Part shown: one piece after another, positions 1,926-8,021 of the stretch | Numbering within the stretch: position 1 is the first letter of the stretch | How the letters are laid out: each line of letters opens with the position of its first letter | The notes under the pieces: generated by a model | The model's database searches: none | What the model was told of the DNA's origin: nothing | The model's input: only the letters and a program-made list of their open reading frames with translations | Assembly (NCBI RefSeq): GCF_048593235.1 | Contig: NC_133622.1 | Span: 256,808,055 to 256,872,054 of the forward strand | Reading direction: 5' to 3' | From: Sminthopsis crassicaudata | Lineage: Eukaryota | DNA length: 64,000 nt | Program-made: the position numbers and the translations under genes

Positions 1926-3127
1926 GGGGAAGAAAGGGGCAAAAGGGAAAGTTGGCAGGAGGGATGAAAGAGAGCGGGAGGAAGAGGTCCAGAAGACCCC
2001 AGCTCTGGAGATCCAAGCTCTGCCCAAGGAATTGGGTGGGGCTCAGACAAGTCCCTTCGCCCCTCGGGCCCAGCCGGCTCCGGCACAGGAGGAAGGGGCC
2101 ACTGACAGATAAACTGAGACCTTCAAATCCTAAGGTCCCAGGCTCCACCTCTGGTCCACCTTGGCCCCGCCTCCCCACCCCCAGGGCCGAAATTCCCTTT
2201 TAGGGGATGGAAGCCACCCCCGAAAAGCCTCCGCCACTGCCAGGCCCAGGCCCCCGGCCCCGGCAGCCGTCTCCATCCTGATTCCCCGCGGTCCGTTTCC
2301 TTTCCTCATCCCCCCAGGAGCCATTGAGGGGAAGGCCGGAGGCCCGGACCGCCCTTCCTCTCCCCCCCCAGTCCCCAATAGGACCAGGAGGGACTTGGCG
2401 GCCCCCACCCTCCTGGCGCTTCCCCCAGCTGGCTTTTAGTGGTTTCCAGGCCCCAAAATCCAGGTCCAGCCATTAAATAGCAGACGGAGAGGCTGAGCCC
2501 CCCAGCTCTTTCCCGCCTCTCTGGGGACCGGCTCCTGAGCCTCCGGGGGGATCGGACCATCCCAGCCCTGGCCCAGAGAGCCAGGACCCCCACCCTCCTC
2601 CTGCCTGGGACCCCTCCCCACCTGAAAGGCATCCCCTGAGGAGAGCCTGGCCCCTCCCCCGCTCCCAGCCCCTAGCTGCCAGGGATCACTGGGGCTTAGT
2701 ACAGATTGTCCGGCCTCCTCCCTCCAGAGACTCCCCAAGAACAGCCCAGCTGTGGCCGGGGATTAGGCCCCGCAAAGCAGAGCAAGAAGCGGGCGGGAAG
2801 GGCTAGCTATCAGGAAGACGTTGCTCCGGGTGAGGAGGCTGTCCCAGAGCGGCCCGGGGCGCCCCCGACAGGGGGGCTGGCTCAGCCCAAAAGCGGGCGC
2901 CCGGCATCCGGCCCAGGCTGAATCTCGCCGTTTCGGGACCAAGGTCTCGACTCCTCGCCAAGAGCCGGGGGCCGGCGAGCGCTCCGCCTCCCCACAAACG
3001 CTCGACCGAGGAGGAGTCTGGCCGGGGTCCCCGCTCCCCTCCGTCTGCCGATCCTCCGGGCCGGCCCCTCCCCCAGCACAGGGGCGCGCCCTGGACCCGG
3101 CTCGGGAGCGGCTGCCCAGCCACTTAC

Positions 3128-3390
3128 CTCGGCCCGAGCTCCGCGGCCTCCCGCCCCCAAGCAGCCCCCCCCCCAGGCCGTGAGAGATGGAGGGCCACGG
3201 GCGGGACGGGACCGAGGCGAGCCTGCGAAGCGCCGGAGCCGCTGCCAGCTCTCCGGGGAAAAGCCCAGCACCCCCTTCGGATCCCCCGGGCCTGGAGGCC
3301 ACCCCCCTGCTTCCGTCTGAAGCCAATTAGGCAGCGGGGATTCGCAGGGGAGGGGGCGGGACGCGAGTGGGGGCGGGGCGGCCGAGTGCC
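3128..3390 (-). promoter_or_regulatory. TSPAN4: Putative TSPAN4 non-coding first exon and GC-box/CCAAT promoter (copy 1)
   Basis: Consensus minus-strand donor GAG|GTAAGTG (plus cacttacctc, 3121-3130), with CCAAT near 3325 and GC boxes at about 3350-3385 upstream. The gene name is inferred only from head-to-head TSPAN4/POLR2L synteny in human; no TSPAN4 coding exon is visible. Confidence 0.45.
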
Positions 3391-4216
3391 CCCCGTCTGG
3401 GAGTGGGGGGGACTGTGTGCGTTGGTGGGGGGGCACTGTGTGTGTTGGGGGAACGCTCTTCCGGCATCCGAGATGCCGAGAGCCGTGGGGGCTGGAGGCA
3501 GAGAGATGGCGGCGAGGGACGACCCCCGGGGGATCGGGGTCCTTCTCCCGACCCCTTCCCTGAGGACTCCGTTGCGGGCTCGGAGATGGAGGAGAGAAGT
3601 CAGAGTCTTCTCGGCCCCCACGCGGGTCGGCGGGTCCATCCCCCCTCTCCGAGCCCGGCAGAGGACGATCGGGCTGTCCGAGAGGACCACGCGCTCGCTC
3701 CCCGGGGCCCCGAGCGCCGGCCGGGCAGAAAGCCTCCTCCAAGTCCTGGGGCCAAAATGGGGCCCCTGCCGCTCCCCAAGGGCCTCAGGGCGTTACGCGA
3801 GGCAGCAAGTTCCAGCCCGGGCTCGCGCCCTCAGCGGCGGCGCCTCCGCCAGTCGCGCCGTCCAGGCCCAGGGTAGGCGGCTCTGCAGCAGGGACTCCCG
3901 GAGCGCACCCCGCGCAGCGCGGAGCCAATGAGCTCGGGAGGCGGGGGCGGCAGCTCCGCCTCGGACTCAGCCCCGCCTCCCAGCTGTCACTCAAATCCAG
4001 AGCGAGAAACGCGCCCGGGCACGGGCCGAGACCTTCTGGCCTAAGCGCGCCGCCGTAGGTGTGGGCGAGACCATCACCACACCGGAAGAGAGGTTGAGAT
4101 GCGCCCCCACGCCGCCGCGGCTTCTCGGGGCCACGCAGCCCGAGACCCCACACGCAGAGAACCGGGTCTGCGGCCTCGGTGAGAACTTCGAGCGGGGTGA
4201 AAAGGGAGCGGGGCCG

Positions 4217-4280
4217 AGCCACTTCCTGCCTCCCTCCCCCCGCTGTTCCAGGCAGTGGAAACAGCCGGAAGCGGAAGCGG
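4217..4280 (+). promoter_or_regulatory. POLR2L copy 1 core promoter with tandem ETS/GABP motifs
   Basis: ccggaagcggaagc at 4265-4278 and an inverted cacttcct near 4220, within a CpG island. Confidence 0.6.
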
Positions 4281-4365
4281 GGACGAGAGGAGGCGGGACT
4301 CCCAGTGTTGCCGGAACTCGGGCTGACGAGGAACCGAAACCGAGCTTACCTCCGCCGCCTCCGCC

Positions 4366-4686
4366 ATGATCATCCCGGTGCGCTGCTTCACGTGCGGCAA
4401 GATCGTGGGCAACAAGTGGGAGGCCTACCTGGGGCTGCTGCAGGCCGAGTACACCGAGGGGTGAGTTCCCGGAGCCCGGGGGGGGGGAGCACCGCGGGGG
4501 GGGAGCTCCTGGGGGAGGAAGGGAGGGGCCTGGGGCCGGCGACCCCCCCCTTCAGGACCCTCTTTGGCCTATTGCAGGGACGCCCTGGACGCGCTGGGCC
4601 TGAAGCGCTACTGCTGCCGGAGGATGCTGCTGTCCCACGTGGACCTGATAGAGAAGCTTCTCAACTACGCGCCCCTGGAGAAGTGA
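4366..4686 (+). CDS. POLR2L: RNA polymerase I/II/III subunit RPABC5 (RPB10), copy 1; exons 4366-4460 and 4578-4686; 67 aa
   Basis: Spliced translation [71 protein letters not shown] intron 4461-4577; AATAAA at 4884-4889. Confidence 0.97.
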
Positions 4687-5690: not shown

Positions 5691-6423
5691 GCCCCCGTCT
5701 GGGAGTGGGTAGGGACTGTGTGTGTTGGGGGAACGCTCTTCCGCCATCCGAGATGCCGAGAGCCGTGGGGGCTGGAGGCAGAGAGACGGCGGCGAGGACG
5801 ACCCCTTCCCTGAGGACTCCGTTGCGGGCTCAGAGATGGAGGAGAGAAGTCAGAGTCTCCCAGCCCGGCAGAGGACGATCGGGCTGTCCGAGAGGACCAC
5901 GCGCTCGCTCCCCGGGGCCCCGAGCGCCGGCCGGGCAGAAAGCCTCCTCCAAGTCCTGGGGCCAAAATGGAGCCCCTGCCGCTCCCCAAGGGCCTCAGGG
6001 CGTTACGCGAGGCAGCAAGTTCCAGCCCGGCCTCCCGCCCTCAGCGGCGGCGCCTCCGCCAGTCGCGCCGTCCAGGCCCAGGGTAGGCGGCTCTGCAGCA
6101 GGGACTCCCAGAGCGCACCCCGCGCAGCGCGGAGCCAATGAGCTCGGGAGGCGGGGGCGACAGCTCCGCCACGGACTCAGCCCCGCCTCCCAGCTGTCAC
6201 TCAAATCCAGAGCGAGAAACGCGCCCGGGCACGGGCCGAGACCTTCTGGCCTAAGCGCGCCGCCGTAGGTGTGGGCGAGACCATCACCACACCGGAAGAG
6301 AGATGCGCCCCCACGCCGCCGCGGCTTCTCGGGGCCACGCAGCCCGAGATCCCACACGCAGAAAACCGGGCCTGCGGCCTCGGTGAGAACTTCGAGCGGG
6401 GTGAAAAGGGAGCGGGGCCGAGC

Positions 6424-6484
6424 CACTTCCTGCCTCCCTCCCCCCGCTGTTCCAGGCAGTGGAAACAGCCGGAAGCGGAAGCGG
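6424..6484 (+). promoter_or_regulatory. POLR2L copy 2 core promoter with tandem ETS/GABP motifs
   Basis: ccggaagcggaagc at 6469-6482, same as copy 1. Confidence 0.6.
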
Positions 6485-6572
6485 GGACGAGAGGAGGCGG
6501 GACACCCAGTGTTGCCTTAACTCTGGCAGACGAAGAACCGAATCTCAGTTTATCTCTGCCGCTACCTCCGCC

Positions 6573-6916
6573 ATGATCATCCCGGTGCGCTGCTTCACAT
6601 GCGGCAAGATCGTGGGCAACAAGTGGGAGGCCTACCTGGGGCTGCTGCAGGCCGAGTACACCGAGGGGTGAGTTCCCGGAGCCCGGGGGGGGGGGAGCAC
6701 CGCGGGGGGGGGAGCACCGCGGGGGGGGGGAGCTCCGGGGGGAAGGAAGGGAGGGGCCTGGGGCCGGCGACCCCCCCCCCTTCAGGACCCTCTTTGGCCT
6801 ATTGCAGGGACGCCCTGGACGCGCTGGGCCTGAAGCGCTACTGCTGCCGGAGGATGCTGCTGTCCCACGTGGACCTGATAGAGAAGCTTCTCAACTACGC
6901 GCCCCTGGAGAAGTGA
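6573..6916 (+). CDS. POLR2L: RPABC5 (RPB10), copy 2; exons 6573-6667 and 6808-6916; 67 aa
   Basis: Same protein as copy 1, with one synonymous change noted (Thr9 ACG vs ACA). GT-AG intron 6668-6807; AATAAA near 7114. Confidence 0.95.
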
Positions 6917-8021
6917 GCCCGCCCCGCGGGGAGGCGCGAGCCCCGTGCGAGGCGAGGCCCCCCAGCCCCGGCCGCCCCGGGATCCCAGCGCGAAATTAAG
7001 CTGTGTTTGGGAAGTGGCGCCGTCTCCCGGGGGCTCCTGCGGGCCCCGAGGCCCCGCCCCCTCCGCGCCGAAGACTTTTTTCAGTGTGTTAAAATTGACG
7101 TTGCATGGCGTGAAATAAAAGTTTAAACACTGGTCTATTTCAGGTGTACTTGAACAAATCCCTCGGGACCCCTGGTGACGCCTCATCAGCCCCCCCCCCA
7201 AGCGAGCTGCCCCTCGGCGGCTGAATTGCTTCCCCTTTTAAAGTTGGGGGGGGAGCTCTACTGGGGCTCCGGGCCCGCCCCTCTTCCCAGCATGCCTCTG
7301 TGTGGGCCCCCCACTGAGCCTCGGGCCTGGCTTGTGCCCAGGCCGTGCCTCCTGCTCCTCGTGGGCTTCACCCGCTGCCTGGCACTGCGGGCCTTCGTAC
7401 ATGCGGGTGGGCGTGAGCCCTTGCGCTGGTCCCTCAGCAGGGGGAGCCTTGGTGCTTCCACGATGGAGCTGGCCCCCCATTTTATTCCCCCAAGAAAGAC
7501 CCTCTGTCGGATGACCAGGAGAGTGTTTTATTCAAGTGTCCCAGCCCTCCCATCCCCGGAGCAAGACCCTCGGGGAGAGCCCAGGAGCACCGGCCCCTCC
7601 CCCAAAGCCCCGTGCGGGGGACCCTGACCTTCCCTGCCCTCCTTTCCACAAAAGGCACAGGCTAACGGGTGGACGCTCTCAAGGCACTTGATACCCCCCC
7701 AGGGGTCATGGGGCTAGGGGTCAGCCTGGAGATGAGGGGTACCCAGGGGAAAGGAGACCCACTCTGGCCCTGTCCCCTCCCCCATGGGTGGAGGCTGCCT
7801 CCTGGCCTGGCATCCGCCCCTCTTCAGGAAGGGTCCAGGACCTCCCCGGGGGGCGGGGCTTATCAGCAGGCTGGGTCAGCCAGTGGGGGGCAGAGGCTTC
7901 CCCACCGAGTCAGTAGTTTCTAAGCAGTAGTCGTGCTGGGCTGTAGCTTAAGTACAAAGACAAAGGAAGGCGGCAATAACTTAGCGTGGGGCAGGCGGGC
8001 GCCCCTTCCCCTGGAGTCGGC

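Follow-up and report, generated by a model that had tools for sequence, protein, structure and literature searches.

A tandem pair of intact POLR2L (RPB10) genes in the genome assembly of Sminthopsis crassicaudata

Introduction

The gene POLR2L codes for RPB10, a zinc-binding small subunit that is common to RNA polymerases I, II and III (Pol I, II and III). To our knowledge, animals nearly always have only one gene for each core subunit of the RNA polymerases, which is attributed to a presumed dosage balance between the members of large complexes. In the human genome POLR2L is a single-copy gene, located between CD151 and TSPAN4 at 11p15.5. Here, we describe two POLR2L genes that follow each other in tandem in a 64,000-nucleotide stretch of DNA from Sminthopsis crassicaudata (assembly GCF_048593235.1, contig NC_133622.1, positions 256,808,055 to 256,872,054 of the forward strand). 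This whole stretch is referred to as the window, and all positions given below are counted from its first nucleotide. Literature searches returned no report of a tandem duplication of POLR2L in a vertebrate.

Adjacent copies of a gene can also be generated in the course of genome assembly. Such false duplications occur frequently and lead to spurious gene gains. They are recognized by four hallmarks, namely a read depth of half or less, single-copy k-mers, discordant read pairs and, for pairs on the same scaffold, an intervening gap, and those located on one scaffold are mostly separated by such a gap (Ko et al. 2022, PMC9516828).

Two intact POLR2L genes in a head-to-tail repeat

The region 3061–7604 of the window is a two-copy direct repeat. 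A repeat search returned families across 3061–7568 with a spacing of 2204–2327 nt, and end-to-end alignment resolves two units on the plus strand, unit 1 at 3061–5380 (2320 nt) and unit 2 at 5381–7604 (2224 nt). In this global alignment 2118 matches are found together with 53 substitutions, corresponding to 97.6% identity over aligned columns, and the 27 indel events amount to 202 nt in all. Since the repeat extends over 2.2 kb at ~98% identity, a chance origin of the similarity is excluded. The original prediction, which was made from the sequence of the window alone, had described 3061–7604 as a tandem duplication, and both the repeat search and the alignment bear this out. It had further pointed to patchy indels, to deletions in unit 2 near 5790 and 5845 and to a different stretch near 5010 versus 7240, all of which are seen in the alignment: the deletions comprise 15+15 nt at 5795–5798 and 34+6 nt at 5858–5861, and the rearranged stretch corresponds to 5014–5060 in unit 1 and 7246–7268 in unit 2.

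Each unit carries a complete POLR2L gene on the plus strand. In copy 1 the ATG at 4366 opens the coding part of exon 1 (4366–4460), which is followed by an intron of 117 nt (4461–4577, GTGAGT..TTGCAG), the exon 2 coding part with its stop codon (4578–4686) and an AATAAA at 4884–4889. Copy 2 has the same organization, with the coding part of exon 1 at 6573–6667, an intron of 140 nt at 6668–6807 (GTGAGT..TTGCAG) that contains an extra 18-nt tandem repeat unit, the coding part of exon 2 with the stop codon at 6808–6916 and an AATAAA at 7114–7119. Both copies encode an identical RPB10 of 67 amino acids (aa), and the sole difference between their coding sequences (CDS) is a synonymous exchange in codon 9, which is ACG in copy 1 and ACA in copy 2. 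All elements of the two complete genes that had been predicted to encode one 67-aa protein (ETS motifs, ATG, GT-AG introns of 117 and 140 nt, stop codon and AATAAA) were located, and the observation of two intact tandem POLR2L genes is confirmed.

As a side aspect, the length of the copy 1 intron is a multiple of three, yet this intron begins with an in-frame TGA, so that a transcript retaining it would yield a protein cut short after residue 32.

The RPB10 product matches PF01194 (RNA_pol_N) over the full profile (1–58 of 58) with an E-value of 1.7e-33 and 115 bits (cut-off 26.9). In 66 of 67 positions it agrees with chain J (RPB10/RPABC5) in the solved Pol II structures of mammals (5flm, 5iy6 and others; residues 1–67 to 1–67), the single difference being Ser51 instead of Ala. 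The cysteines of the CxxC...CC motif in RPB10 act as zinc ligands, and all four of them (C7, C10, C44 and C45) are intact in both products. The exact 67-aa sequence (P0121) is common in vertebrates, occurring in ~150 genome assemblies, and UniRef lists 66 Euteleostomi for it. Because the protein is identical to that of species with one gene, RPB10 from both copies would be expected to enter Pol I, II and III. Since the proteins encoded by the two copies are identical, neither is a polymerase-specific paralogue.

Breakpoints and proposed mechanism

A 15-nt sequence, CCGGCCCCTCCCCCA, marks all three boundaries of the duplication on the plus strand. It is present as an exact copy at the left edge (3061–3075), at the junction of the two units (5381–5395) and at the right edge (7590–7604), which is located inside the 3' untranslated region (UTR) of a converging CD151-like gene. 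The left flank of the junction copy equals the flank at the right edge and its right flank equals the flank at the left edge; the left side of the left-edge copy is unrelated to the left side of the junction. Taken together, the boundary flanks give the order L-A-U-A-U-A-R, as a duplication of L-A-U-A-R at a short homology predicts. The exact sequence is also found at 49742, and allowing up to one mismatch yields 9 matches against 0.31 expected by chance.

From this arrangement we infer template switching or microhomology-mediated joining; ordinary unequal crossing-over between homologous sequences would require more than 15 nt. According to the mechanism we propose, template switching or unequal joining took place between two copies of the GC-rich 15-nt sequence, one located upstream of POLR2L, shortly beyond a donor-like site on the minus strand, and the other in the converging CD151-like 3' UTR, and would have led to a tandem duplication of ~2.2–2.3 kb. 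The left breakpoint is located ~50 nt past the minus-strand donor-like GGTAAGT (3128–3122). The right breakpoint is located ~420 nt into the CD151-like 3' UTR and ~60 nt ahead of the first minus-strand AATAAA. Because it precedes them, both CD151-like AATAAA signals were copied into unit 1. The duplicated unit comprises all of POLR2L as well as ~1.3 kb of CpG-rich putative promoter DNA upstream of it. With gene and promoter contained in the unit, both copies are structurally complete, and transcription of both would be expected. The most likely classification is a known kind of event, a microhomology-mediated tandem duplication, that affected a normally single-copy gene.

We consider it probable that the repeat reflects a genuine tandem segmental duplication, which took place at the ancestral locus of POLR2L, because the gene order is conserved, the intron is retained in both copies, there is no gap between the copies, the microhomology footprint is exact and the divergence lies above usual heterozygosity. 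As in a true tandem duplication, the copies are arranged head-to-tail in uninterrupted sequence with definable breakpoints. Moreover, the slippage-type indels of 15–34 nt and the cluster of differences in the 5' leader (see below) are unlike read error or ordinary heterozygosity.

Divergence between the units and the 5' leader

Outside the CDS and a patch in the leader, 2.1% of the sites differ between the units, corresponding to a Jukes-Cantor distance of 0.021. With a rate of 1–2.5e-9 substitutions per site and year this gives a rough age of ~4–11 million years for the duplication, the true rate in such CpG-rich DNA being unsure. If gene conversion has been present, this age would be an underestimate.

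Upstream of the genes, between 3240–3651 and 5547–5861, all seven larger indels are shorter in unit 2, which adds up to ~112 nt, and several of them are flanked by short direct repeats, as slippage predicts. In a comparison of the two units alone, a loss in unit 2 and a gain in unit 1 look alike.

The putative promoter region of copy 1 (4222–4316, plus strand) contains ETS cores at 4222 (CTTCC), at 4265–4273 within CCGGAAGCGGAAG (4265–4277) and at 4311 (CCGGAA). The corresponding putative promoter region of copy 2 (6426–6482, plus strand) has ETS cores at 6426 and at 6469–6477; the fourth core, CCGGAA at 4311 in copy 1, reads CCTTAA in copy 2. Directly before the ATG the two leaders differ by 12 substitutions and one 3-nt indel, i.e. 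by ~21% over 58 nt. In copy 1 this patch (4300–4357) has 64% GC and 7 CpG, in copy 2 (6504–6564) 49% GC and 3 CpG. The 13 events in 60 columns were matched in none of 5000 permutations. Such strong divergence is seen in these 58 nt only, the units being ~98% alike otherwise, and both leaders have similar, unremarkable folding energies. No donor for either version of the leader was found elsewhere in the window. Divergence of the leader is the sole hint, and only a hint, of a divergent regulation of the two genes, which the original prediction had named beside dosage as a possible ground for retention of the pair.

For polarization of the leader changes we turned to the POLR2L locus of assembly GCA_015852505.1 (L001), presumably that of the echidna. 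The upstream DNA of this locus does not align with that of the window. At 9980–10003 of L001 the ATG stands directly after ...CCCCTTAG/GCGCCATG, which resembles a splice acceptor. In contrast to the window genes, L001 may thus have an intron within its 5' UTR.

Within the CDS neither nonsynonymous exchanges (3.2 expected from the background) nor indels (2.8 expected) are present, which gives a joint P of ~0.003. A low number of differences is not restricted to the coding part: exon 2 and the 3' UTR together show 2 events in 400 nt and include a perfect run of 246 nt, a length reached in ~1% of permutations. Since the tract of low divergence continues into the 3' UTR, conservation of the CDS is explained as well by gene conversion as by selection. 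Gene conversion or constraint on the UTR may contribute beside selection on the protein, and the extra CDS would have been kept intact by purifying selection, gene conversion or both. Most likely, the extra POLR2L copy has not acquired a new function but is tolerated or of slight relevance for dosage.

Transcription and fate of the copies

In the RNA run X13, all 28 sampled words of 4578–4905, which covers exon 2 and the 3' UTR of copy 1, are present. This segment differs from its counterpart in copy 2 only at 4788 (T) versus 7018 (C). At a sampling of ~1 word per 10.6 positions it is very probable that one of the words covers 4788. Consequently, transcription of the copy 1 form is most likely. 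From many further RNA runs ~3 of the sampled words are missing (share 0.89), which would fit carriage of the C form.

A real duplication does not necessarily imply two working genes. One copy could be silent, or the pair could be a segregating copy-number variant (CNV), and the extra gene would then be a neutral passenger nearing loss. Most young tandem duplicates are short-lived or polymorphic, and dosage sensitivity is to be expected of proteins that form part of multi-subunit complexes. In addition, copy 2 is devoid of one ETS core near the likely start site, and unit 2 is shorter by ~112 nt due to deletions in 5547–5861. On the other hand, promoter, splice sites, open reading frame (ORF) and poly(A) signal have been kept in both copies, and the lack of any disabling change is improbable under neutrality, given the joint P of ~0.003. 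The divergence of ~2% also exceeds the typical coalescence age of a polymorphism. A silent or segregating copy appears unlikely.

Assembly artefact or real duplication

It is conceivable that a single gene of the organism was written twice in the assembly, either because two haplotypes were placed in tandem or due to an error in gap-filling or under-collapse. Several observations weigh against a real duplication. The 53 substitutions comprise 26 transitions and 27 transversions, and a ratio of ~1 is unusual in neutral mammalian divergence. Eleven of the 27 indels are changes of 1–2 nt in homopolymer runs, i.e. possible assembly errors, and the duplicated region, with ~68% GC and many homopolymer runs, is difficult to assemble. 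Several N runs are present elsewhere in the window, and false duplications frequently yield false gene gains (PMC9516828). Other results are uninformative as to whether the duplication is real. An exact look-up of six junction-spanning or copy-specific ORFs in a collection of 15 billion proteins gave no hit, there being no sign that ORFs from the DNA contigs of this genome are part of this collection. Likewise, a homology search with the junction ORF 5082–5621 yielded no match, and in a search with a query that fused the leader of copy 2 to RPB10 no match extended to the leader. Runs from two DNA samples contained 0.59–0.73 of the sampled words of 4690–6572, a share that does not resolve the junction.

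Nevertheless, several features of the sequence argue against such an error. No N run is present in or between the units, the closest ones in the window being located at 1613–1740 and 19608–19781, so that the copies adjoin directly and do not show the gap by which false duplications on one scaffold are mostly separated (PMC9516828). The boundaries are sharp, and the exact 15-nt microhomology is arranged as a true tandem duplication predicts, which would be unexpected for a mis-join. A haplotig of 2.3 kb would be far below the contig size of an assembler. Furthermore, ~2% substitutions, indels of 15–34 nt and a 58-nt patch with 21% divergence exceed typical heterozygosity. We therefore regard an artefact as quite unlikely.

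Possible gene conversion in an old duplicate

Instead of being young, the duplication could be old and fixed, and repeated gene conversion could have held the units ~98% alike. The leaders would then have been kept apart by different regulation of the two genes, e.g. in germline versus soma or depending on growth. The uneven divergence, with 13 events in 60 leader columns opposed to a perfect tract of 246 nt, would agree with this scenario, as would the change of one ETS core in copy 2, where CCTTAA replaces CCGGAA, and the absence of four of the seven leader CpGs from this copy. However, non-genic parts of the units are ~97–98% identical right up to the unit ends, and the microhomology at the breakpoints is still exact. 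Both features agree better with a young event than with conversion tracts that end at the unit boundaries by coincidence. In addition, the leaders have a similar folding energy, and a comparison of the two versions with each other leaves the leader changes unpolarized. An old pair maintained in this way is very unlikely. If it existed, this would be a rare animal lineage with two differently regulated genes for a core subunit of all three nuclear RNA polymerases.

An origin of either copy by retroposition was rejected, since both copies retain the intron and their own promoter with 1.3 kb of upstream DNA and are located at the syntenic locus.

Neighbouring genes and synteny

The gene to the right of the duplication is a tetraspanin on the minus strand, with a coding range of 8022–10605 that runs from MGEYNEKK... 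to ...SLKLEHY and a stop codon at 8024–8022. Three of its exon ORFs match PF00335 in profile order, and judging by the human protein we take it to be CD151. Further to the right follow the first exon of a patatin gene (minus strand, ~38.2 kb), a start that we assign to an RPLP2-like gene by a motif only (minus strand, ~41.3 kb; this ORF has no match in Pfam) and exons with leucine-rich repeats (LRR) of a PIDD1-like gene (plus strand, 47.0–47.6 kb). The gene order in the window is that of human 11p15.5 reversed. Because of this agreement, POLR2L in the window can be regarded as residing at its ancestral locus. The left neighbour is assumed to be TSPAN4 on the basis of the human gene order; no coding exons of TSPAN4 were found within the window. 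The donor-like GGTAAGT at 3122–3128 on the minus strand may represent the end of a putative non-coding first exon of this neighbour.

Both neighbours would be remodelled by the duplication. A duplicate of the minus-strand donor-like site is present in unit 2 at 5442–5448, and with it a putative second minus-strand first exon. The CD151-like gene ends with two AATAAA on the minus strand (7486–7481 and 7532–7527, within 7481–7532), of which an orphan pair is found at 5276–5271 and 5322–5317 (within 5271–5322, minus strand). Within 5271–5690, the donor-like site of unit 2 (5448–5442) together with CpG-rich DNA is thereby situated ~120–170 nt upstream, in minus sense, of the orphan pair. A minus-strand transcript from unit 2 could end at these signals as a short chimeric RNA.

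Other ORFs inside the duplication unit contain no Pfam domains, and there are no Rfam matches within the 64-kb window. Outside the duplication, a family of direct repeats of ~127 nt (10 overlapping copies, 61–76% identity) occupies 1340–1995 around the N run at 1613–1740. Long CA/TG-rich simple-sequence tracts at 31800–32900 and 57600–58130 give rise to artificial His/Thr-rich open frames.

Other species

Ten loci at which the identical protein is encoded in further vertebrate assemblies, namely L001 and nine others that are taken to be fishes by their neighbouring genes, have one POLR2L copy each within ±10 kb. All ten belong to distant species. The duplication is likely lineage-specific. This part of the original prediction holds only coarsely, in that one copy each is present at ten distant vertebrate loci.

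Implications

Should the duplication be fixed and expressed, a tandem duplicate of RPB10 would provide a small natural test of the dosage-balance rule. It would, moreover, neatly illustrate how a microhomology-mediated duplication can copy an entire gene together with its promoter and, by adding a presumed minus-strand first exon and orphan CD151 poly(A) signals, remodel two neighbours at once. In case of an assembly error or a private variant, only a caveat for annotation would result, namely a false POLR2L-like gene that inflates counts of gene gains.

Comparison with known systems

The closest described counterpart is human POLR2L/RPABC5 at 11p15.5. Both loci share the PF01194 family, the structure of two coding exons and a converging tetraspanin at the 3' end, and the patatin, RPLP2-like and PIDD1-like genes further on have like orientations. 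The window differs in that a tandem pair replaces the single gene. At the protein level, the solved mammalian RPB10 chains have Ala51, whereas the window product has Ser51, as is the case in fishes and L001.

Additional RPB10-coding sequences are also found as RPABC5-like retrocopies in several mammals and as duplicated RPB10 genes in plants. In contrast to the retrocopies, the copies in the window retain intron, promoter and ancestral locus, and are consequently duplicates at the DNA level. Among plant sequences, a maize protein of 147 aa (P0135) scores like two RPB10 units and may derive from a tandem pair that was fused in the gene model.

With false heterotype or homotype duplications (PMC9516828) the pair shares the presence of an adjacent near-identical gene copy and the location in GC-rich DNA of a vertebrate assembly. 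It differs from them by the missing gap, the microhomology at the breakpoints and a divergence above usual heterozygosity.

Head-to-tail copies, sharp breakpoints and a 15-nt identity at three boundaries are features in common with microhomology-mediated tandem duplications, as attributed to replication slippage or observed in CNVs of the FoSTeS/MMBIR type. Compared with the latter, the event in the window comprises an entire housekeeping gene, and its copies have meanwhile diverged by ~2%, the presumed mechanism being read from the footprint only.

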